Positions 6,641-64,000 are shown, counted from the first letter of the stretch. The stretch: 64,000 nucleotides of DNA from Sminthopsis crassicaudata (GCF_048593235.1 NC_133620.1:23313123-23377122), one strand, 5' to 3'. A program made the numbers and translations. Notes: a model not told the origin generated them from the sequence alone.

Positions 6641-7027
<387 letters not shown>

Positions 7028-45850: not shown

Positions 45851-47229
45851 CTGCCATTTGATGGGCTTATTTTTGGAAATCTCTAATAGTTCTGACACTT
45901 TTCACCTGGTGCCCTACCTCCCTTTGAAAGGCTGGGTTTGTGGTCAGTTTTTCTCCTTTGTATTTCCCAGAACTCAAGAGCTGTTGGCTGGTTTTGTTTT
46001 CCACAGGCCTTTATTATCAAAATGGATGTGTTTGCATACATGAGGTGAGTCATCATTGAGGGTAAAATCAGCACCAAGAAAGAGCTGGGCCCCACAGTCA
46101 GGAGGGGGGCCCTCTGCTCTGGACACAGTCAGTGTGACCATGGCTACGCACAGGTAGCATTTAGCTTATTGTTAAGGGATTAGGAAGGGCGGTGTGGGAG
46201 ATTAGGAGTTGATAGACCTTTCTCTCCCTCCCTAACTCACTATGACCCGGCCCAAATCTCTTTTCACTCTCCCCCCCAGTTTCCTCCTGCTCTTTCTCCT
46301 CTAAAATGGCAACAAAGGAGATGCTAACATGCTAATGAATCAGCTTTGCTCCTCAGTAACTGAGCTGGTAAAAGGTGGTCAGGGTTAGGCCGGTGCCCAA
46401 ACAGGAAGTCTGGGGGCTACTTCTGGCTCTATCTGATTTGCTGTGTGACTTTGGTCAAGGCATGAGAGGGGATTCATGTTCAGGTATAGTTTGGACCAGA
46501 TCCAATGAGAGGGTGTAGGTAAAGTATATTTAAAAACCTACAGGAGCCCCTTTAGTGACTTTTATTCAGTTTCTGATGGTCTCTGAGGGTCCTTTGAATT
46601 CAGAAGGTCTGAGGAGATTCTGGGGGCTTGAACTACATGGTCTCCAGGGTCCCCCTTCCCTCCACTGTAACATGTTGTGACTAATAGGTGGAACATTGTG
46701 AATTGGATCCCAGTGGGGCAGACCAGCTCCTTACCCTACTTTCTAGACCCTGATATAAAGAGAGTTGTGATGAGCAAAGTCCTGGGGGGAAAGATTAGCT
46801 TCATAGTCACAATGGTCTCATAGCAGAGAATGGTAAGGAGAGACCATTAAGAACCCTTGGGATGTTAAGAGCAGAAGGAGCATCAGAGACCATCTAGTTC
46901 AACCAGGCCCCATGTACAAGTGGGGAAAATGAAATCCAGAGAAAGGAAGCAATTTATGCAAGATCAGAGAGGGAAGTTGTGTTGGTCCCATAATTGGGAT
47001 TAGCACCAGGATTCCTTACTTCCACTTTGGTTTTCTAATAGTAAGAATCATCCTGGGGCTTCCATAGTTGTTATTTATCAGGGTCCTTCACCCCTCTTTT
47101 TCCCTCTCCTTTCTCCTCCCATAGGCACTAGGCTCTTTCATTATCTCTTCCCCACTTTCTCTGGCACTTACTCCCAGACCTGTTCATACAGACATTTTGA
47201 AGTTGATGGTAACTTCTTCTTGGCAGAGA

Positions 47230-47835
47230 ATTCTGACTAGTTGGTTAGTTCCTTTTGATTGTGAATTTCTATTGACTACAATTTTTATTGGTTAGTGAGG
47301 TTTGATTGGTCAAAGAGTTCTTATTGGCTATATGTTCCTTTTGTTCATGAGTGAGTTATTATTGGCTACTGAGAGCTTATTATTTCTTGTTTCTGAGTCC
47401 TTATTGGCCTCCAGTTTTTATAGTTTACTGAGATTTCAATAGCTACAAGTTCTTATAGAATGATGAATCTTTATTGATCACTAATTTCTCAGAACTTAAT
47501 AACTGCAAATTCTCATAGGCTAATGAGGAATTCTTATTGGCTCCAAGTAACTATTACCTCTTGTCTTCTGATTGACCAGATGTTTGTAAAGGCTTCTGAA
47601 TCCTTATTAGTTACTAAGATCTCAGTAGCCACAACTTCTTATAGAGCGATAAAGAATTTTTATTGGTCACAAGTTCTTATTGGCTGCTGAAACCTTATTG
47701 GTTACAAGTTTCTTATAGGCTATTGAGCATTTATTGGTCCCACAGCATTACTTGGAAGAGATTCTGAGATATTAGTAGCCACAAATTCTTATAAGCTGCT
47801 GAGTTCTTATTGGTCTCAAGTTCTTATTGGCTCTG
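47230..47835. repeat. Degenerate tandem array of AGTTCTTATTGGCT-like units
   Basis: 12 ATTGG copies on the plus strand between 47287 and 47830, most in TTATTGG context. Confidence 0.85.
47284..47735 (-). terminator. Cluster of four AATAAA hexamers downstream of the GPX7 stop (candidate poly(A) signals)
   Basis: Plus-strand TTTATT at 47730-47735, 47659-47664, 47470-47475 and 47284-47289, about 250-700 nt after the TAA. Confidence 0.55.
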
Positions 47836-47982
47836 TCTAGATTAAAAGTAGAATATATCTCTAAAACCATGGGCTTAAAGAACAAGGAAGGAATAATCTA
47901 TTCCTGAAAGGCACCTGTAAGAAAAAAAAAATCTGACATTCACATTTGGCATTCACATTTGACACTGTGAAGTCAAGAATGA

Positions 47983-48146
47983 TTATAATTCTTCCTTCTT
48001 CCCCACGATGAGCTTCCCCACGAGCTCGTGGATCTTGGGTCGAATTTCTTCTACTGATACAGTTGAGTCCCAGGCTCCCACCACTTTTCCATTCGGGGCG
48101 ACTAAGTACTTCCAGAAATTCCAAGTTGGCTCTTCCCCTGAGGATT
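47983..48146 (-). CDS. GPX7: Glutathione peroxidase 7, coding exon 3 (164 nt incl. TAA)
   Basis: Acceptor TCCTTTTTACCCAG|AA; (E)SSGEEPTWNFWKYLVAPNGKVVGAWDSTVSVEEIRPKIHELVGKLIVGKKEEL*. WNF catalytic motif and a KDEL-like KEEL ER-retrieval signal. Phase matches exon 2. Confidence 0.97.
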
Positions 48147-49076
48147 CTGGGTAAAAAGGAAGATAAGAAAATACAAGAAATCAGGTAGATCTTCAGGTAG
48201 GGGAAGAGGGGACAGAAGGGTTTCCTATTTTCCATGGATAGGACCTTCTATCTCCTTACTTTGATTACTTCCTGTTTCCTCCACTCCTGAAATTTCCCCA
48301 TTAGCATTCATCCCTCTAACTCTGAACCTGTGAAAAAGTATTCTATGTCCTGAGAAGAATAATACCATAAACCATTCTGTTTCCAGTCACTGACCCCTCA
48401 GTGTCTTTCTGATTCTTTCCTGAGAGCATTGCCTTAATAGTGAGAGTGGCCACATTCAAGGGATGCTTTAGAAAAGATTCCAAGTCAGATACCATTTGAA
48501 TTATATGGCTTTTGAGGCTCCTTCCAAATATATGATTTGGGGTTTCCCCCTTTATTTTTAGCTGGTGAGAGTGGGGAGTAAGAGAGAGTGTTATGAGCTT
48601 CTATTTCTGAAATGTTCATGGTTTATAATGTGCTTTCCTCAATACAAGCCTTTGAGGTGGGCAGTTCAAGTGTTACCATTAAAGAAGTGACAGGATTGTC
48701 CATGATCACATAGTTGGGGATTTGAACTCAAGTCTCCTGATTCTAAGTCTGGTATTCTTTGTACTGGGACAGCAAGGTGGCACTGAGATTGTAGTCTGGA
48801 AGACTCTTCTTCATGAGTTCAAATCTGACCTTTTTTATTTACAGTATATTTACAGATAAACTCAATTTATTAATCCAACAAGCATTTATTAAGTACTTGT
48901 CTCCCTAGGTTGCCCAAAGCACTGAGGGGGACTTGCCAGAGTTATAGAGCCAGTATGTGGCAGAGGTTTTATAAACACTCTTGGGATTGCCTTGAATAAG
49001 AGGAACCAGAGAAATCTGAGACACCATTTGCTAGGATGGCTAGATGGGTCCTGAGCTCCTTAGGGACATAGCTTAC

Positions 49077-49338
49077 CAATTAGATATTTGAAGGCAGCAT
49101 TGGCCCCAGTACCACGGACAGCGATCTTGCTGAACATGGGGAAAGAAACTCCATAAGTCTTCCGTGCAAAGTTTTCAATCTCCTTGTTGGTGTCTGGCTC
49201 CTGCTGCCCAAACTGGTTGCAGGGAAAGGCAAGCACGTTGAAATGGTGTGGTCCCAGGTCCCGCTGCAGCTGCTGAAGGGCTCGGTAATGCTGGTCCGTG
49301 TAGCCACACTCACTGGCCACGTTAACAACCAGTGACAC
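49077..49338 (-). CDS. GPX7: Glutathione peroxidase 7, coding exon 2 (262 nt)
   Basis: Acceptor CTCCTTCCTCAG|GTG; VSLVVNVASECGYTDQHYRALQQLQRDLGPHHFNVLAFPCNQFGQQEPDTNKEIENFARKTYGVSFPMFSKIAVRGTGANAAFKYLI. Peroxidatic Cys (TGT, not Sec) and FPCNQF motif present. Donor TTG|GTAAGC. Confidence 0.97.
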
Positions 49339-49540
49339 CTGAGGAAGGAGGACAAATTCTTGTTGATTGATTGACACACACCACAGAATTGAGTGACTAA
49401 GCAAACATGCAAAAAGAACTATAGTTTCACATGGAATCATAAGCACAGACACATGTATGAAAGCAATGACAAACAACATTTTCTAACTGGTCATCTTGTC
49501 ACAGAGCCTTCTCCTGGGCATCAAGGGGGACACATAATTT

Positions 49541-50694
49541 AAGATTCAGGCCCTATTTTTATGGAATCTAGTAGATTAATAAGACACAGATACATCTAAG
49601 GCTGAGACAATATCAAATGATAATTTACTAATAAAAACATGTAGGTGTACACACAGATGTAGGTATGGTATTTATCCACACATATATACATGAACATATG
49701 TATAATAATTGTCACTTACATGAAGCTTTAAGTTTTATAAAATGCTTTATAAATGTGATCTCATTTTATGTATTATCTCATTAAATATATCACAGATCCA
49801 GTCATAAGTATATATTAATTAAGATTTAGGCCCTGTCTTTGTGGAACATTATAATCTAGGTGGTTAATAAGACAGATATATCTAAGAATGAGATATAATA
49901 TCAAATGATAATTTACTAATAAAAATAGGTAGGTTGACCCGAAGATGTAGGTATGGTATTTATCCACACACATATACATGAAAATATGTATAATCATTGT
50001 TCCTTATATGGGGCTTTAAATTTTATAAAATGCTTTATAAATATGATCTCATTTTATGTATTATCTCATTATATTTATCACAGATCCAATCATAAGTATA
50101 TATTAACTAAGATTCAAGCTCTACTTTTATAGAACATAATATCTAGGTGGCTAATAAGACACAAATGTATCTAAGTATGTGAAAATACAATATTAAATAC
50201 AATATCAAAAGATAATTTACTAAAAAAACATGTAGGTGGACATAAATATGTAGGTATGGTATTTATCCATACACATGTACATGAAAATGATACATATTTT
50301 ATACATTTATACCATTATGTCATAAATGCCATTATACATTGGCATTTATATAGAGTTTTAAATTTTATAAAGTGCTTTATAAATATCATCTCATTTTATA
50401 TATTATCTCATTTTATATATATATTATAGATCCAGTTATAATTATATGTTAACTAAGATTTTAAAATGCTTTATAAATATGATCTCATTTTATGTTTTAT
50501 CTCATTAAATATATCACAGATCCAGTCATAAGGATATATTAATTAAGATTCAGGCCCTGTCTTTATGGAACATTATATCTAAGTGATTAATAAGACAGAT
50601 ATATCTAAGAATGAGATACAATATCAAATAATAATTTACTAATAAAAACATATAGGTGGACACAAAGATGTAGGTATAGTATTAATCCACATAC

Positions 50695-50744
<50 letters not shown>

Positions 50745-52195
50745 GAACATATGTATAATTGTTATTTATAGGAGGCTTTACGTTTTATAAAATGCTTTAT
50801 ACATATCTCATTTTATATATTATCTCATTATATGTATTATAGATCCAGTTATAAGTATATATTAACTAAGATTATAAAATGTTTTATAAATATGACCTCA
50901 TTAAATATATATAAATATATTATATATAAATATTTCTCATTAAATATATCACAGATCCAGTCATAAGTATATATTAATTAAGATATATTAATTAAGATTC
51001 AGGCCCTATCTTTGTGGAACATCATATCTAGGTGGTTAATAAGACACAGATATATCTAAGACTGAGATATAATATCAATTGATAATTTACTAATAAAAAC
51101 ATGTAGGTGGACCTGCAGATGTAAGTATGGTATTTATCCATACACATGTACATGAAAATGATACATATTTTATACATTTATACCATTATGTCATAAATGC
51201 CATTATACATTGGCATTTATATAGGTTTTAAATTTTATAAAGTGCTTTATAAATATCATCTCATTTTATATATTATCTCATTATATATATATTATAGATC
51301 CAGTTATAAGTATATGTTAACGAAGATTATAAAATGCTTTATAAATATGATCTCATTTTATGTTTTATCTCATTAAATATATCACAGATCCAGTCATAAG
51401 TATATATTAATTAAGATTCAGGCCCTGTCTTTATGGAACATTATATCTAAGTGATTAATAAGACAGATATATCTAAGAATGAGATACAATATCAAATAAT
51501 AATTTACTAATAAAAACATATAGGTGGACACAAAGATGTAGGTATGGTATTAATCCACACACAGATATATGAACATATGTATAATTGTTATTTATATGAG
51601 GCTTTAAGTTTTATAAAATGCTTTATACATATCTCATTTTATATATTATATCATTATATATATTATAGATCCAGTTATAAGTATATGTTAACTAAGATTA
51701 TAAAATGCTTTATAAATATGATCTCATTTTATGTATTATCTCATATTTATCACAGATCAAGTCATAAGTATATATTAATTAAGATTCAGGCCCTCTATGG
51801 AACATTATATCTAAGTGGTTAATATAATATAGTATATAATATATATAATATAATAATATTATATAATATGTAATAATATTATATGTAATAGATAACATAA
51901 TTATAAAATAATATATATGATATATATGATATAATACATCCAAGGATGAGATTCAATATGAAATGATAATTTACTAATTAAAAACATGTAGGTAGACACA
52001 CAGATGTAGGTATGATATTTATCCATACACATGTACATGAAAATTATACATATTTTATACCATTTATCCCATTATATCATAAATGCCATTATACATTGGC
52101 ATTTATATAGGGGTTTAAATTTTATAAAATGCTTTATAAATATCATCTCATTTTACGTATTATCTCATCACATATCACAGATCCAGTCATATGTG
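49541..52195. repeat. AT-rich tandem array, 7 units of 280-449 bp, in GPX7 intron 1
   Basis: AAGATT(C/T)A(G/A)GC unit starts at 49541, 49821, 50109, 50545, 50994, 51413 and 51781. A (CA)n/(TA)n run is embedded near 50692-50742. Confidence 0.95.
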
Positions 52196-52199
52196 TGTA

Positions 52200-53640
52200 T
52201 ATCTATAAGGAATTTATCATCTCTATGCAAATAACCCTTAATCCTACTTTCTCTTCTGAACATTTATATCATTTCACAAGTTACCTAGTGGATATTTCCA
52301 ATCAAATGTTTCATAGACACCTTAAATTCAATATGTCTAAAATAGGATTCACCTTTTACTCCAAATGCTCCCCTCATATCTGAATTTCCCATCACTATTA
52401 AGGATATTATGCTCCCAGTCTTTCAGACTCACAACCTGGGGTTATCCTTGACTCCTCATTTTCTCTCAAGCCCCCAATTATTACAAGTCCTGTTGATTCT
52501 AACTTTCTCAACATCTTTCCTACACCCCACCTTTGACATTGCCATCAACCTGGTGCAGTCCTTTATCATCTCATGCTTAGAATTTTTCAAAAGCCTTTTG
52601 ACTGGCTTCCCTCCCTCCAGCTTCTTTCCATTCATCCCTATCCCTCTCACCCATCTGAGTGATCATCCTAAAGTACAGATCTTACTTGTAACTCCTTATT
52701 AAAATCCAGTGACTCATTGTCTCCAAGATCAAATCTTCTGATTGGGTTTCATAGACTTTTATAGCTCAGCCCTATCTTACCAGTTTTCTTATACCTTACT
52801 TTTTCTCTGTACTCTAAATTCCAGTGACATTGGTCCCTTTGCTGTTTCTCAAACAAGGTCCCATCTCTGTATTCTGAGTGTTTTTCCTGGCTGTCCCGAA
52901 TGCCTGGAATACTCATTTCCACTTCCTGCCTTTCCTGACTTCCTTTAAGTTTCACCTAAAAAACAGAGTGGGGCAGCTAGGGGGCAAAGCGAATAGAGTT
53001 AGGAGGCTGAAAATTAGCCTCAGACACAAAGCTATGTGGTTTTGGATAAGTCACTTAACCCCAGATTGCCTTGAAAAAATCTTACTTTCTGCAAGAAGTC
53101 TTTCTTAATTCCTGGTTAAATGTGAGGGCCTTCCCTCTGAGATTATCTCCAATTTCTATATATGTTTCCTGTGTGGAAATAGTTTGCTTATCATCTCCCT
53201 GCATTAAATTGCATGTTCATTGAGGGCAGGAATTATTTTTACTTTCTTTGTATACCTATAGTTTAGCACAAAGTCTGATACATAATAAATGTTTGGTTAC
53301 TATAAACAAAGCCTACATTTGAGAAATTGGAGATAATCTCCAAAGACAGCAATATCTAGGGAAATAAGAAAAGGCTTTCTGCAGGAGAGATTTTAGAAAA
53401 AAACTTGAGAAAGCTAGGAGTCAGTAAAGGGTAAAGAATTCAGACATGGTGGACAACCCATGAAAATGCAGAGTTGGGAAATGGAGCATCTTGTTTGAGA
53501 AGGCTATGAGCCTGGGCACCTGGAAGGGTGAGAGTGTCTTTGTCAGCAAGAGGGAAGTTAGAAAGAAGGGATGGTTTGGAGGTCTAGCAGAGGGACTGGA
53601 GCATAGTATGTGTTTGATAAATGCTTTTTGATTGACTGAT
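52200..53640. mobile_element. L2 3' fragments (plus 52200-53300, minus 53300-53640) with a WSINE-like insert
   Basis: L2 signatures such as cttaaattcaatatgtctaaaat, gggcaggaattatt...tagcaca...aataaatgttt; SINE head ggggcagctagg at 52970. Confidence 0.65.
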
Positions 53641-55749
53641 ATTGAACTAGATCTGTGCCAGTATACTGTCAGTTCAGTGGCACAATTGATGGGGTACAAC
53701 TTCTAGGGAACTATCCCAATAATCCTGAGACCCCTGACCCTAGGACAAATATTAGTGATTGTCAGATAAATAATCTGTCAATAACCCTAAGGTCTCATAG
53801 CCTTGACAGTAATATATATATATTCCCCTAACTTTTAGGAAAGATGTAGTTATAATCTTGAGATCCTCTGACTTTACTATAGTCCTACAAACACTGCTGA
53901 CTGTCAGATAAACACTCTATTAGCTCTCCAAGGAGAGCTCTGTCCACCATGTCACACTGCCACTCATGCCGTACACAGACACCTATAAACAGAGAACCAT
54001 GTGTGGGAACATGACCACACCTACACAAGCACAGATGTCCACGTCCTTAGAACACACCTATTCAAGTACATAAACATGTTTCTGTGTATGGGACAAACAT
54101 CTTGTGCAGAAGCACAAGTCTATCCACAAAATCTGCATGCTTTTGGACTTTCAGGCTATCTCCCGAATCAGCTTGGGAGGAACAAGTGAGAACCTCTAGT
54201 CCAGTCCAAGCCTCTAGACCAACCACGTTAGGATCTCTCTCTGTTTCTATGCTTCTTCCATTAAAAAAAATAAATTCTTCATTCTCAGGAACATCCTTCA
54301 GGGTTGGGAAGTCTTCTCCATGTGTTACTCTTCCAAGAAGGAAGAGAGAAAAAGGTCAGACCTCTGGGGCAGAGCCAAAATCTGACCTCCACCCAATCAC
54401 AAAGATGGCTTGGGTGGTGCTTCCTTCTTTTTTTATGTTTGGCTTTGCTTTCCTTATCTGTCAGAAAGGAATAATAATAGCGCACATTCAGGCACAGTTG
54501 GTTTTAAATTGCTTCCCCTATCCTATGTCATGGGAACTTCTCGACTTTACCTTATAAGGAGAGAGCGTGTCCATAGAGCAGGACCTCGTGATTTTGTCCA
54601 ACAGCTGCACATGGCGACCTGTCTATAACTTAGGAGGTAAGGCTTAGGGTATGTAAGTGGCCATTTGGATGCTAATATTATCCAACTACATGACCTTACA
54701 TGGCTAAGCTGGTGAAGAGCCTTGAGTCCATTCCACGTGAGGGTCACCCCATATGAGGATCTGTGGAAAGACCTAGGCAAGTTTAGCTTGGAGAGCCAAG
54801 GGGATTGAGAGAACTCAGTTCAAAACCCAGAAGATCCATTGCCTGGTTTAATCGAGCTCCCAGGGCAGAATCAGGAATGGCTGGAAGGCGCCGAGATGCA
54901 AATTTAGACTAGGAGACGACAAAACCCTCCAAACCCTTTGAGAAATGGCTTGGGTGACCTCTGGAGGAAGGTCCTAGATTTCCCTTCCCGATCTTCAAGT
55001 ATCACCTGGATGACCAGTTTTTAGAGGTTCAAATAGGTTGGACCAGACCAGGGATTCCTGTATGCCCTTGATGACTTGGCAAAGAAAGTGAACCATTTCA
55101 CAGAATTGTGGGTTTGTTAAATAATAACATATATGCATATATAAATAAAAATATAGAGAAATATTCCTATCCAAGTCCATAGACCTCCCTGAAATTTCTC
55201 CATAAGTGTATACTAGATTAAAACCCCCTGTATTACATGAATGCTCTCCTTAGGTCTTTCCTAATTTTATTATTCTGGGATATTATAATAACATTATTGA
55301 AAAAAAGTATATTACTCTTCAGCCTTAATTAACCACCAATGAACAAACGTTTATTAAGGGTTTATATGATGGGGAACTACACTGGGAACTAAGGATATAT
55401 GAGATGGTTCTCTCCTTTTATTCCCACCACTTTATTCCCGGAGGCTGGCAGCTTTCAGGTGTCCCATTTTGCAGAGGAAGAACCAGTGCCTCAGAGAGGA
55501 ACCACCAGTAGCAGAAGAGGGGGCTTAGGGTGACTGGCCCTGCTGCACAAATCCCCAGGCTTGCACTGGGTCTGCAGTCAGATGGCCCAAGTTCCAGTTT
55601 TGCTTCTGCCTCTTGTTTTGAGGGGGCCGTAGCCTCCCTCTGGCCTGTGCTTCATCCCGTATAAAATGGACTGGCTTTTTATTTTTATTACATCCCCAGC
55701 TCCAGGGCTATGAGCACTAGGCCCTCCCTAGGCTCAGCCTCCCCCTTGC

Positions 55750-57310
55750 CTGAGACGGAGGCGGGAGGGGGGGGGGGGCTGAGCTGCCACTGCAGGGGTG
55801 ACTGGTGGCTCTAGGCCTGCCCCGCTGCGGCTTTCTGCAGGCCTGCGTTCTTCCCATTTAGGGCCTGCCTGCTTGTCTAGCTCAGACAGCAGGTGTCAAT
55901 GTAGCAAAGCTGCGTGCGCATCCGTCCTTGGCCTCGGCCTTGGCCGCAGAGTGACAGCAGCATCTGCACTGGGCCCGCCCCCCGCCCCCCGGAAGACAGC
56001 TTCCCCGGAAGTGGCCGCCGCCTACCCGCAGCAGCCGCCACCGTGGCAGCAGCTGCCACGCTGGCCCTGCCCAGGGCGCATGCGCAGGAGCCCTGGCCCG
56101 CTGGCCTTGGCGCCCGCCCCAGTCACATGGCTGGAGGGAGGCTCAAATGAAAGAATGCTGGCAAAAATAACGCTTGGGGCCGGGAAGCGCCAGGGGGTGG
56201 GGGAGGGCTGTTATTAATTATTAATAAAAGAGAGCCCCTGGGCTGCTGGGTCCCGCACTGACGTCAGGACGCCTGGAGCGCACCACCTGCGGTTGGCCGC
56301 AGCTGCCAATCAGGGCGTTGTGACGGAGCGGACCAGCTGGGCCCGCCCCAGGGGTCTTGGGGGTCTGCAGGCCCCAGTGGGGGGGAGACTAGGGTGACGA
56401 GCTAATTTGATAAACTCATTGCCGATACTTGGGCCAAGAAGGCTTTGCAGAGGGACTGGGCGGACCCCACCTGTGCGGCGGCGGTGAACCGCGGCTGAAG
56501 TGGTGGCGGACCCTAGCCCACGAACCCCGCCGCCTGCCCCCTAGCCCTGCGGACCCCATCGCCCACACCCTCCCCCCACCCCCAGCCCTTAGCCCGGCTG
56601 CTCAGGGGACCCCGAGGCAGCTGTTGCAGACCCGAGCCCGGCTGTTCTAGTCTCTGGCCCGGGAGGGGGATGATGCGTTTGGGCGTGGCGGACCCTGCCG
56701 GCAGCCGAGTAGCAACAGCAGCTGCAGTTGCCGCAGTGCCCCCCCCCCCCCCTCGGCCGTGCCCATGCCGCAGTGCCGCGGTGCCTTATGGGAGCGGCTG
56801 AGTCTGGCTCCCCGCCCAGCCATCTCAGGCGAGGGGCCGGGGTTTGGGGGCGGGGGCGGGGGCGGCGGCGGCCTTGGCGCTGGGCCTCTGCAAACGTCTG
56901 GCTGGGCCGGGCTGGCCGGGAGGGCCCCAGCCAGCGCCTCCCCGCCGGGGCCTCCCCAGCCTACGCGCTTGGGGAGCCTGGCAGGCTGCCCAGCCGCCCT
57001 CCCTCCCATCCCCGGGTGGAGACTGTCTTCCCGCCAGGGCGGGGCAGCCAGGCCGGGAGGCCCCAACAGCTGCGGCTTTCAGCTCTGAAGCCCTTTTCTG
57101 TGCTAGGGTCCGCGGCGGGCCCCATTCCCAGCCCTCGCTGGTGGCCTCCCCAGCCTTTATGGGCCTGGCACCCTCCGATGGCGGCAGGGGCCCAGCCTGG
57201 GAGCTGGAAGGGTCTCCTGGTTCCCGGGGTTTAGCGGGAAAGAGGGAGGGAGGGAGGGAGCTGCCCGCCGGGGGCCCTGGTCACTGTGGCGGGCAGGGTG
57301 GGTAGGGGCC
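55750..57310. promoter_or_regulatory. CpG island / housekeeping-type promoter (owner gene not visible; TUT4 is a synteny-based guess)
   Basis: GC/CpG rich. Tandem ETS sites CCGGAAG 55989-55995 and CCGGAAGTG 56005-56013, NRF1 GCGCATGCGC 56076-56085, CRE TGACGTCA 56259-56266, CCAAT 56306-56310, GC boxes near 55971 and 56340. Confidence 0.85.
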
Positions 57311-58854
57311 TCCGCTTTCAAGCAGGGGGCTGACTTAGCCTAGCCCAGAGGGGGATGGATTTCCAGGGAAAGAATGTCAGGCACCACATCATAGGATGGG
57401 AGGCTGGAGGCCTGGCAGGGGCTGAAGAACAAAGGGCATTAGAACCAAGAAGATGGACTAGCACAGCTGGGAGGGAGCTCAAGCACGCAGGGTTGGGGTT
57501 GGGAGGGGCTTCTGCACCCAGAACCATTAGGGCCCCTGGGGTCTCCGGAGCCTTCAGACTGCAGAAGACCTCCGAAGCCCAGACTTTGGAGATGGTGGGG
57601 ACTTTAGAACCCAGAAAGCCAGGACTGCAGGGACTATCACCAAGTGGCAATTGGGGACCGTTCGAATGGGAAAGGAGATGAATGCATGAATCATCAGAAC
57701 TGGGAGGGACCTCAGAAAATATATTGTCAGAGTTGGAAAGGATCTTAGAACATAGATGTCAAGGTACAAGGAAGAGAGTGTTCAAGCCAAAAGGAGCTTT
57801 AGAACAGCAAGCTGGGAAGAATAAAGAATATTTGAACAGAATTTCAGAACTGGGAGGGCCCTTTTAGGCAAGAAACATTTATTAAGCATTGTGATAAGCA
57901 CAGAAGCACCCAGGATACACTTGAGCACAAGAACCATCAGAGTTAGGTGAAATCTGAGCATATCTTATATCAAAGAAGGGGAGGACTTTAGAGTTCAATT
58001 CATTTTACATATTGGGGAAAATAAAGCTCATCGAGGGGCAAGAACTACCCTGTCTTACTTGGGGGAGTCCAGGTCCTCTGACTCCAAACCCCATGCTGCT
58101 CCTACATCATATTGTCTTTGTACATGGTGGTCCTGAGATAGATGGGTATTAAATTAAAAGCCAGACCCATAGGAGATAATTTTTTTTCACTCATTCAACC
58201 CTTACAAACTTTATTATGAACTCGATCTGGTGCTAGGTACTGGGAAAGAAGCAGAATCAAATAAAATCCTGTCCCTGTTTTCAAGGAGGTTCAAGATGAC
58301 TCAGAAGACATGACATGTATATAAATGACCATAACTCAAAAGGAAAAATGAAAACTACATAGTGAGGGCATGAAGTGGTATAATCAGAAGAGAATCTTTC
58401 CAACTGGGGGAACCAGGAAAGATTTTTTTGGAGGAGGGAGACAGGGAACCAGCATTTATAATGAACCCAGAGGAAAGGGTGAAGAAGTATTTGACATTTG
58501 CAATGATCTTTCTTTGAAGTCTTTTCCCAAGGTTTCTTCAAGGCTAGAGCTCTCAAAGGCTCGATCAGTGGAGTTGGAGGGGTTAATGATGGGCTGCACT
58601 GACTCCCAGGAACCATGTAGCTAAGGCAGAAGGACTCAGCCTATGGCTGATTTCAGTCTCAGACATAGTAGTTCCTGAAGCACAGTAAGTCACACAGAGG
58701 GGCTACAATCTGGGCCACTGCAGGTTAGGATTGCTCTCTGACTAAATCACAGACTCTCAAAGCATGAAGTAGTTGTGCTTGACATTCTACGTGTAGCAAT
58801 AGAACACAAATACTAATAGTCAATGGTTTACTTTACTTTTGCCTGCATGACTGG

Positions 58855-59605
58855 CCCCTTTTCTCTGATGACATCCTTTATGCCATTTCTTCTGTGCAAG
58901 TCTTCATTGTGAACATGTTTTATTATGCTGATGTCCCCCACAGTCCTCTCCATTGCGTCTTAGGTGACCCGCAATTTTAATTCTTTAGAGACTGTGGTAT
59001 TCTATGATTCATGGCCATTTAGCATCATAGAAGAATATTAATGTAAAAAAGGTGGGCTTTTGTTTCATGAGAAAGCTTGAGGATATTAAAAGTATTGCAC
59101 AATTTTCCAAAGTCAACCCAGCCCACTCTTCCTTTTATACATTTCTGGTCCCAGTTTATTGTCCATCTGAAATCTGTCCAAGATTTATGTATTGATGCAC
59201 TATCTAGGTTGAATGGTTGATTGTCCATGTGATCTTATATCTTCTTTTAGACCAGTGGTCCTCATACTTTTTAAGTAGGGGGCCAGTTCCCTGTCCCTCA
59301 GACTGTGGGAGTGCTGGACTATAGTAAAAACAAAAGCTCACACTCTGTCTCTGCCCTTCAGCCCATTTGCCATAACCTGGTGGGCCGCATAAATGTCCTC
59401 AGCAGGCCGCATCTGGCTCACAGGCCATAGTTTGAGAACCCCTGTTTTAAACGATAGATATCCTACACCTCTTTTACTCCTTTGTGAATAGTTAGGCTAA
59501 GGTACTTTGTGCTATTATGAATATCTGCAAAAAAGCTCAGCAGTGTCCCAGAACTAGATGCAATCAGCATAATATCATTTGCAAACAAAGACATCTGGAG
59601 GAGCT
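58855..59605 (-). mobile_element. Decayed RTE LINE (RT C-terminal region), split by a hAT MITE
   Basis: Minus-strand LQMSLFANDIMLIASSSGTL (FADD-like), GWVDFGKLCNTFNILKLSHETKAHLF, and NTTVSKELKLRVT...MER. Confidence 0.85.
59253..59444. mobile_element. 192-bp non-autonomous hAT MITE, OposCharlie1 (OC1)-like
   Basis: TIRs CAGTGGTCCTCATACT versus CAGGGGTTCTCAAACT (13/16). 8-bp TSD TTTTAGAC (59245-59252) and TTTTAAAC (59445-59452). Confidence 0.88.
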
Positions 59606-62239
59606 CAGCATCCATCTTCTTCGGTGTCATATTTGCTCTGGATCAGCTCATTAAAATCTTCCCATGTTTTTCTGAATTCTTTGTACTCATAATTTTAAAA
59701 ATACAATATTGCCTATGTTTATGTACCATAATCTATCATTCCCCAGTTGATGGGCATACAGTTTGTCTCCTTAAATTTGTTTTTCTCTCCTTACTATTTT
59801 ATTAGGCAATAATACTCTATTTCTTCCATCATCTTCTTCTGTAGAATTGTACAAATATGTTTTAAGTCTTTGTTGTCCTTGACTATCAAACCTTTACCCT
59901 TAACAAGAAGATCAGGTATTTGCTGATGGAGATATGTTTCTAGGATCTTCTGGTATCCTCAATGTAATATTTAGTTTATATTCTAAGCATCCTTAAGAAA
60001 TGGTAATAATCTGTATTAATGCCATTTCTTTTATCCATGTCTCATTTGGGGGTGGCTTATTTACACAGATTAGGTTGGTTTTTGCCTCAATATTTTCTTC
60101 CCCTTTTCTTCTATTTGTTGTTAATTTTTATTTTGGTGTGTTAATTTTACTATGATAAATCTATGGATTGAGCTACACATGCAGCTGATTTGGAAAAGGC
60201 TCTCACCTTGGTAACCAGTCATTTCCTGTCTATAAGCATTTAACACTTTCATTTTCCATGAGAAGCAGTGTAGTATGCTGAATAAATAATAATGAGAATA
60301 GCTTCCATTGATGCAGCACCTACTATGTACCAAGTACTGTGTTAAATGCTTTACAAATATAATTTCATTTGAGCCTCACAACAACACTGAGAGGTGAGTG
60401 CTATTTTTATCTTTGTCTTACAGATGAAAAAATAACTGAAGTAAACAGGAATTAAGCAACTTGCTAAGATTATATAGTTAATTACTCTATATAATTCAGG
60501 GTTCAGGTCTTTCCAGCTGGGGAAATCATGAAAGATTTTCTGAGACAAAGGAGACAAGGAACCAGCATTTAAAATGGATCCAGAAGAAAGAATAAAGGAA
60601 GATTTCTACTTTGCACAATTACTAGCTATATGACCTTGAGCAAGTCACTTAATATTTATTTCTCATTTTCAGGTTCCTCATATGTTAAATGAGACTCATG
60701 GCTTCTCAGGTCTCTTTTGGCTCAAAATCTGTGATTCCATATCCACCATATCCTACACCTTTCAATTCTCTTCTTGAGAAAATATTAATAATCAGTGATT
60801 GGCCCTTCTCATTTCTTGCTCCTGAACTTTGTCCTCCAACACTTTTTTTTGTACTGTCCCTTCTACTGTGACATTGAAATCTTCAAATATTAGAGCATAT
60901 GTTCATTTAATTAGGAGGGTCCTACTGCATTCTTTGTAGAATTTATCTACCTCCTTATTCTCTGCAACAGATGTTGGAATGGAAACTATAAATACCTTCA
61001 AAGTGGTCTCATTGCAAACATCCATCATGAGCACTACAATATCTCATGAAATGATGGTTTTTGTTCTCTTTGGATATGGAATAGAACCAACCCTGCTAAC
61101 TCTTTTCTTTGTCTCTTTGTGAAAAGCCTGTCTCCTTCCCTTAAGCTAGTTTTAGTTGCCTGTGTTTTCCTATTTGCAGAAAAAGGATCAAGGAGCATGT
61201 AATTTGGTTCCTTCCAATAGTATAATATGCAGGTCATTAGACATCATGTGTAGGGAATATTTAAGTCCTTATTTAGGGAATATCTAAGTTATTCATTATT
61301 GATGGTTTAAAAATTGTGGGATTCATATATCCTATGTCCCCTTTTCTACGTCTCTGACACCATTACTACAGAAATAGAAGAACCTACGCCATTTTGTATT
61401 TTTCTTTGGTCACAACTTGCTGGTTCCAGCTTACTGGACAAAAAGCTTTCTGTACTTAGCTGGACTGGTCCTTAGAAAGTAGATGCAGTCTATTGCTAGG
61501 ATCATACTTGGGGCCTTTCCAACATGGTAGAACCTGACAGAGCTTGCACCTTGCTGGCATAACCTGTGAGAATTCTTAGTCACTTCCCATCCTTAATGAG
61601 GACTTGGTGAAGAAATGAAAGCCCAAGTAAAAAATAATAATGGTAATGATAATATACAATTAACATTTATGTAGCACCTACTGTGTGCCAGGCACTGTGC
61701 TAAGCACTTTACATATACATTATTTCATACTCACAATGACCCTGAGAGGTGCATGCAATTAGTATCCTCATTTTATGGGAAATTAAGTCATTTAAAATTG
61801 TAATTGTAATTAAGTAATTCCTAATTAAGAGATTAAGTAATTTATCCAGTTTACATGAAAAGGAAGCACCTCAGCCTGAATTTGGATTCCTCTTTCTGAC
61901 TGCAGGCCCAGCACTCTGACATCTAACTTCCCCAAGTGTAGCCCAACTTTTTCACGAATATCTGAATAATGATGAAAACCTAAGAGAAGGCCTCCAGAAC
62001 ATTGGATGGATTCTGTATAGAGCATTTAATGGAAGACATTGAGACAAGAGTCCCAAAGCTTAGCATAGTACTTAAAACACAGCAATCACCTAGTAAATAC
62101 CATTTGACAAGATCTGGATGGATTATAATATAGGAGGTTGAAAAGAGATACACTGATGAGATCACGGCTCCATGGAAGCATTATAAGAGGAGAACTATCC
62201 TTAGTATACCTCACCAGCCTCAAATCCTTCTGAGGAGCT

Positions 62240-62580
62240 GGAGAGATTGGAATATTCTTATAGGAGTGTCATGTACCTGCCTTCTGTTCTTACTTTCTTC
62301 TCCTGTATTCCCCCTTTATACATCCAAGTTGGTTAGTGAGCAGCCTGTGCATCCACATCAATCTCTTAGGTTCAACAACCCTCCAACTTTCCCATCATTT
62401 TCCTTCCTTCCCTCCCCAGCAATCAGTTTCTCCTTGTTGCTCACAATAAAATCCAAAACAGCAATTCCTCTAAGCATTTTCTCTACCTTTTGAAGGATGG
62501 ATGATATTAGCATGAAGGCAAAGTAAATGTTCTTAGTTGTTCTGCCTTTGTGTGATAAAGAGAGACAACTGATAGACAAA
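62240..62580 (-). mobile_element. CR1/L3 endonuclease remnant
   Basis: ILQKVEKMLRGIAVLDFIVSNKEKLIAG resembles the CR1 endonuclease LQKVEEPTRG-AILDLILTN-EELV motif. Confidence 0.75.
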
Positions 62581-63289
62581 TAATCACAAGCCCCATCACT
62601 GCAATAGCATTCACATCAGGTGTATTCTTCTATACTCTCTTCTCTTTCCACCTTCTTTCTTTTTGGTCTGCAAAAAATGTAAATGATAGTATTCCCTCTG
62701 TTTATCCCTCCATTGATCTTGGCCCTAATGAACTTCACTATTCTCTACTTTGGATCCTGGAGAACCAAAATGAGCTTATCTTGTTAATAAACAATATTAC
62801 TCCTCTCCCCTTTTATCTATTTCACTCCTTTTGGATAATTTATATCCTTCCAGAATGACATTCTAACTCAGGATGCTATCCCACCAAGTCTCAGTGAGAC
62901 CTATGAAGTTGAATTTGCCTCTGGAGGTTAGTATCTTTTTTCCTTTTTAAAGTATTGAGATTCTTATTATAATCACTATTACTTTTCAATGACCTGAATT
63001 ACATACACAATAATGCACTTGTTTGTGGAAGACAGATAGAATGAGCATTTATTAAATATATATTATATGTTAAGCATTGGGACAAACATTGGGATACAAA
63101 TACAAATAAGCAGAATACTTCCTTCCTTCAGAGAGCTTACATTGTAGTGGAAGATAGTAGATAAATGGGGGCTGGAAGGAAGAGGAATCTGCAGAGTGGG
63201 ATGATTTAGAGCTGGTGATAGTACAATCAAATAAACTAAATCAATTCATTTACCATGTCAGAAAATGTGTGCTTCATTTTGTACACATT

Positions 63290-63950
63290 CCTCATCATCT
63301 CTTTACTGGGAGGTAGGAAGGATATATCAAGACTGAGGGAAATCTGTTTATGGTTATAGTGGCAGGGAAGAAGACAATATAATGAGAGATGAGAGACTGA
63401 AGAGGGGAGAAGAGTATGATATGATTACTAGGACATACTCCTGGAGGATATAGTAGGGCATGAGATTGAGGACCCAAGTAAAATCCATCAAGTTTTCTCA
63501 AACCCACTCACAGTAGAGTCTTTTTTTTATTTTGTTGATTACTGATATTTTATTTATTTGTGTACAAAAATGTAAAGCCATTTAATGTGATTCAACCGGC
63601 CTTTTGGGGGGCATTACTGCATCTACCACAAATCTGTTGCTCCATGGCAATCTTGTTTTTCCTTTCTACCCATGTTCCCTTTCCTACAGTTATTCCAATA
63701 CTTTTCTTGCAGATTCACTACATCACTCCCAAATCCTTCTCAAAGTATTTGACCTCATCTACTTTGCTGAGAAAATCAAAGGACCATCTGTTATGAGCCC
63801 CCTCATCTCCCCTTACTCTACACCTCAAAACTTTTCTACATGGACAATCTCCAATTACCACCTTTTTCATCAAGGTCAACCACTTTCCTTGGGCACTCAA
63901 TCCCATCCTTTTTTGGTATTTTCCAGGACTTTGTTCCAAATAAATAACAA
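63290..63950. mobile_element. L2 remnants (minus 63290-63490, plus 63670-63950)
   Basis: LLYPPG resembles the L2 endonuclease IYRPPG motif; gacctcatctactttgctgagaaaatcaaagg resembles L2 ORF2. Confidence 0.55.
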
Positions 63951-64000
63951 AATAATAACAAAATTAATAACAAAAACAATAGGTTTGTAAAGTGCTTTGC

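Follow-up and report, generated by a model that had tools for sequence, protein, structure and literature searches.

The first exon of GPX7 in Sminthopsis crassicaudata is absent from a 64-kb genomic window but is spliced onto exon 2 in presumed RNA contigs

Results

A canonical first exon of GPX7 exists and is used in the dunnart S. crassicaudata, as contigs from presumed RNA runs carry its end spliced onto the exon 2 acceptor at position 49338. The exon is absent from both strands of the window, by which we mean the whole 64-kb stretch of DNA analyzed here. It probably lies beyond the end of the window, which would give intron 1 a length above 14,662 nt. The locus carries a normal ER peroxidase gene, GPX7, that is expressed; Table 1 collects the coordinates of its parts and of two notable segments upstream of exon 2.

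Table 1. Features of GPX7 and its upstream region, with positions counted from the first letter of the window.
Feature	Position	Strand	Description
GC-rich promoter-like block	55700..57300		GC 0.70, CpG o/e 0.52; inside or upstream of GPX7
AT-rich minisatellite-like tandem array	49565..51936		From TRF and composition; GC 0.20-0.29; in intron 1
GPX7 intron 1, 3' part	49339..64000	minus	At least 14,662 nt; no N; no exon 1 found
GPX7 exon 2	49077..49338	minus	262 nt, phase-0 start; Pfam and 2p31 matches; spliced contigs of four runs
GPX7 intron 2	48147..49076	minus	930 nt, GT..AG; junction 48146->49077 in four of four runs
GPX7 exon 3, coding part	47983..48146	minus	Stop codon 47985-47983; tail ...GKKEEL
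GPX7 3' UTR	46009..47982	minus	~2 kb; RNA contig positions 992-2138 fall on 47000-48146, giving an end at ~46009

Exons 2 and 3 Encode an Intact GPX7

A preliminary description of this stretch had reported exons 2 and 3 to be intact with canonical splice sites, and both the sequence and the spliced contigs bear this out. The acceptor of exon 2 reads ...ctccttcctcag/GTGTCACTGG and its donor ATTG/gtaagc, where the slash marks the exon boundary. The exon holds 87 whole codons and its peptide begins VSLVVNVASECG... The catalytic residue, found in an NVASECG context, is cysteine (TGT, within ...GCCAGTGAGTGTGGC...) and not selenocysteine, and we confirmed the earlier statement that exon 2 has no methionine ahead of this residue (VSLVVNVASEC).

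Both exons were searched and compared singly, never as a joined model. Exon 2 matched positions 25-107/108 of the Pfam family GSHPx (PF00255) with an E value of 1.4e-30 and a score of 105.5 bits (cut-off, 27 bits), and the human GPX7 structure 2p31 with an E value of 1.4e-50. The values obtained with GPX8 (3kij and 3cyn, ~4e-31) and with GPX4 (~1e-19) place the exon nearer to GPX7 than to these paralogues. Human GPX7 is a non-selenocysteine, ER-resident glutathione peroxidase; exon 2 is ~92% identical to it over 85 aligned residues, as counted from the alignment with 2p31, and the catalytic cysteine is common to both proteins. When the exon translations were compared with the annotated GPX7 protein of the same species, XP_074122019.1 (P0270), all 87 residues of exon 2 and all 53 of exon 3 were identical.

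Exon 3 ends in KEEL followed directly by the stop codon, a C-terminal tail of the ER-retrieval (KDEL-like) type, whereas the human protein ends in REDL. The dunnart tail would be expected to work in ER retrieval. An AATAAA signal at 46015 on the minus strand lies just within the end of the RNA contig of run X1.

Intron 2 holds a marsupial SINE fragment at ~48760-48835. Over 48793-48831, many contigs of 31-38 nt from RNA-type runs pile up at very high depths of up to 1600, each with one mismatch. This segment (...gagttcaaatctgacc...) looks, by its sequence, like the tail of a common marsupial tRNA-derived SINE, so that the pile-up is best read as repeat k-mers and not as a local small RNA.

Presumed RNA Contigs Carry the Canonical End of Exon 1

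Logan contigs from four runs, which belong to four studies of the same organism (X1, X2, X9, and X17), were compared with positions 47000-49560. The runs were presumed, by guess, to be RNA. They look like cDNA because intron 2 is removed exactly, because the word share is ~0.5, from exons only, and because their contig sets amount to 77-640 Mb against a genome of 3.2 Gb. In each run, one contig of 2.56-2.62 kb spans the 3' UTR, exon 3, and exon 2, and skips intron 2 to the base in all four cases (CT..AC on the plus strand, equivalent to GT..AG on the gene strand).

At the other end, these contigs continue past the acceptor at 49338 by 159, 218, 188, and 258 nt into sequence that has no match in the examined stretch. 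The first 30 nt beyond exon 2 are identical in all four runs. Their reverse complement, with the shared G included and translated in frame with exon 2, reads WVSLEKYRGS/VSLVVNVASE with a phase-0 boundary, in agreement with the phase-0 donor that had been expected for exon 1. RNA junctions into acceptor 49338, which the preliminary description had named as a check, were hence found in four of four runs, and each of them joins the canonical end of exon 1.

Across 1.4 kb, the sequences of X1 and X2 agree with the window at every base, which speaks against an old retrocopy as their source. The coding part of exon 1 measures 171 nt in XP_074122019.1 and the overhang in X9 is 258 nt long, so that at least 87 nt of this overhang represent 5' UTR.

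Single-base differences from the window were seen in the two other runs. X17 and X9 share five of them in the GPX7 3' UTR, and X9 alone differs at one additional site in each of the 3' UTR and exon 2, the latter being 49198 C>T; the differences fall within 47047-47595 and at 49198. They are probably alleles that vary among animals.

Exon 1 Is Absent From Both Strands of the Window

Runs of N start at 20030, 22082, 32807, and 39722 in the window, all of them between 20030 and 39858, and there is none in 49339-64000. The earlier finding that this gap-free segment contains no exon 1 holds after a motif scan, protein-level searches, and a nucleotide probe, all of which covered the entire window.

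The 23-aa motif given in the preliminary description, scanned without gaps through the six frames under BLOSUM62, reached a top score of 21, within stop-containing noise. Searches with tblastn, which had been suggested as a check of the missing exon, were run at word size 2 with filters off and with 19 vertebrate peptides altogether, and returned only low-complexity chance matches. For five vertebrate GPX7 proteins (of placental, bird/reptile-type, and fish-type origin), the exon-1 portion gave a best E value of 0.14 against the window. With 12 marsupial and 2 monotreme peptides, including the dunnart's own, the best E value was 0.03 and the matches were all Leu/Pro runs of low complexity. One tblastn match at 56065-56015 (ASVAAAATV--AAAAGRRR) was rejected as a chance alignment to an Ala-rich GCN run. 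A probe made of the terminal 30 nt of exon 1, exactly as read in the RNA contigs, had zero matches in the window on either strand with up to three mismatches allowed.

The N-terminal signal peptide and the pattern DFY.F..VN.RG..VSLEKYRGS that follows it are consequently found nowhere in the window; the last 10 codons of this region are present in the spliced contigs and the whole of it in XP_074122019.1.

Full-Length Annotated Marsupial GPX7 Proteins Carry Exon 1

XP_074122019.1 is a protein of 198 aa, named 'glutathione peroxidase 7 [Sminthopsis crassicaudata]' and recorded on a contig of 478.7 Mb. Its exon 1 encodes 57 aa, is canonical, and ends in KWVSLEKYRGS, the same end that we read from the RNA contigs. 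The name carries neither a 'partial' nor a 'low quality' tag. Under NCBI naming, an untagged model means that the exon is present in the assembly from which the model was made, which may differ from the assembly of the window. Dunnart GPX7 is an ordinary gene that is already annotated in the species, and the comparison with XP_074122019.1 revealed no protein difference: exons 2 and 3, the end of exon 1, and the KEEL tail are all alike.

The canonical exon 1 (...DFYNFKVVNIRGKWVSLEKYRGS) is present in all 12 full-length marsupial models of the 90% cluster, dunnart included. In these models it encodes 55-63 aa, made up of a signal peptide and then PGPKESDFYNFKVVNIRGKWVSLEKYRGS, with N in place of K in the opossum. 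Human GPX7 has three coding exons with the boundary between exons 1 and 2 after ...KYRGS, and the dunnart gene has the same layout. Two differences from the human exon 1 were noted. The dunnart exon is longer (57 aa compared to ~46 aa), reflecting a longer signal-peptide region in marsupials, and marsupials have Lys-Trp where the human protein has Lys-Leu before VSLEKYRGS.

An older opossum model, F6TRR3_MONDO (P0278), shows the same symptom as the window: directly before VSLVV it starts with 16 residues (MIEDLHKTRPCNKEKQ) that do not resemble the canonical exon 1. That exon is present in the newer opossum model (P0275), and F6TRR3_MONDO represents an annotation artefact in another species, whereas the dunnart exon is demonstrated directly by the RNA evidence.

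A further protein match was seen far from the gene. A Lynx 'GPX7' isoform (P0003) has an unusual C-terminal part, residues 153-200, that matches 6783-6926 on the minus strand (tblastn, E 3e-6, 44% identity), in a stop-containing frame ~40 kb downstream of GPX7. Probably, a segment shared by the two sequences, conserved or derived from a repeat, was exonised in the cat-family isoform.

A Long First Intron Probably Places Exon 1 Beyond the Window

Our preferred reading is that the canonical exon 1, comprising the signal peptide, the conserved ...DFYNFKVVNIRGKWVSLEKYRGS end, and a phase-0 donor, would lie upstream of exon 2 at a distance of more than 14,662 nt and past position 64000, presumably just past it on the same chromosome. 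The exon would then seem to be missing only because a long intron 1, filled with repeats, runs past the edge of the window. We consider it likely that the exon spliced to 49338 lies beyond the window end in this way, since a full-length untagged model exists on a chromosome-sized contig and since the 14.7 kb upstream of exon 2 look like an ordinary intron. This segment is filled with intron-type sequence, namely the tandem array and marsupial SINE-type repeats. The human intron 1 measures a few kb, so that the dunnart intron, at 14.7 kb or more, would be several times as long.

The tandem array has periods of ~288 and ~417 nt with nested sub-repeats of 87-92 nt and 17 nt, and it includes a (CA)22 run at 50688-50731. 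Further upstream, at 52200-52950, GC skew falls to -0.5 and the plus strand is pyrimidine-rich; this segment adjoins a 'ggggcagctaggggg' SINE head at ~52965 and looks like an interspersed repeat within intron 1.

An alternative that we regard as unlikely, but that still deserves weight, is a fault of the assembly, by which exon 1 would lie within ~15 kb of exon 2 and would have been lost or collapsed without leaving Ns, for instance within the GC-rich block or beside the tandem array. GC-rich first exons are a classic case of dropout, and the promoter-like block, which contains long homopolymers of G and of C, is found 6.4-8 kb upstream of exon 2, roughly the place of exon 1 under a short intron 1. 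Against this, no remnant of exon 1 was found at the edges of the block, and its CpG o/e of 0.52 is below the expectation for an active CpG-island promoter. The array is of a collapsible kind, spans 2.4 kb, and begins 230 nt from exon 2; yet 49339-64000 contains no N or any other sign of a join. That F6TRR3_MONDO likewise lacks the canonical exon could be taken in favor of a fault, as could the existence of draft dunnart assemblies made from noisy long reads with scaffolding (PMC11091235). The full-length, untagged GPX7 model on a chromosome-sized contig of the same species argues the other way.

Loss or replacement of exon 1 in the lineage, leaving a new first exon or a decaying fragment, is very improbable. 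Its sole support is the absence of the exon from the window. The canonical end of exon 1 is spliced to exon 2 in all four runs, exon 1 is kept in the full-length marsupial models, and exons 2 and 3 are intact, with ~92% identity to the human protein across the aligned stretch. No observation suggests that exon 1 is inside the window and was overlooked owing to divergence, a frameshift, or a position on the opposite strand, and the chance of this is practically negligible, as neither the exon-1 peptide of the dunnart itself nor the exact RNA-derived 30 nt finds a match on the two strands of the window.

The preliminary description had left three explanations side by side. An intron 1 of more than 14.6 kb has come out as the best supported of them, by inference; loss or replacement in the lineage is refuted by the spliced contigs together with the annotated 57-aa exon; and misassembly is retained with the low probability given above.

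The GC-Rich Block Upstream of Exon 2 Resembles a Promoter

The block at 55.7-57.3 kb had been called a CpG island, one that might belong to TUT4 given the human order TUT4-GPX7-SHISAL2A-COA7. It is indeed GC-rich, but its CpG content is only intermediate, with an o/e ratio above 0.6 solely within 56.0-56.8 kb. The only CRE of the window (TGACGTCA, at 56259) and its only NRF1 palindrome (GCGCATGCGC, at 56076) are both located in the block, together with two plus-strand CCGGAAG sites (55989 and 56005) and GC boxes. Judged from this composition, the block looks like a promoter, possibly a bidirectional one. It may be an intronic or a divergent promoter and probably sits inside the long first intron of GPX7. 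Just downstream of it, at 57.2-58.0 kb, the plus strand has a GC skew of +0.2 to +0.35, a weak hint of transcription from the plus strand, away from GPX7.

No coding gene was recognized in this region. The seven ORFs of the block matched no Pfam family, the lone match of 14.6 bits being at chance level, and the ORFs across 57.5-64 kb were noise-like, with none exon-like up to 64000. Across 55-64 kb, this ORF-based approach revealed neither a TUT4 exon nor another coding signal. Rfam families at gathering score were absent throughout the window.

No CpG island in the window is stronger than the one at 16600-17800 (GC 0.69, o/e 0.78), which is much above the block upstream of GPX7 in this respect. 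It is presumably the promoter of a neighboring gene.

Discussion

An apparent loss of the first coding exon of GPX7 in the dunnart probably has an ordinary explanation. With the fold, the catalytic cysteine, the KDEL-like tail, and exon 1 present in RNA, the gene in the window is a normal GPX7 family member, and it departs from the human gene only in minor ways.

The only mildly interesting remainder is the promoter-like GC-rich block, which probably lies in the long intron 1. One could imagine that in dasyurids an intron 1 that has grown beyond 14.7 kb encloses this block, and that its CRE, NRF1, ETS, and GC-box sites drive TUT4 or an unannotated lncRNA on the plus strand. We hold this to be rather improbable. 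If it were true, GPX7 and a divergent neighbor would overlap head-to-head, with the GPX7 promoter inside the first intron of that neighbor.

These results call for caution: a conserved gene whose first exon seems to be absent from a fixed window, or from an older model (opossum F6TRR3, for example), has not necessarily lost it, and spliced RNA contigs resolve such an apparent loss quickly.
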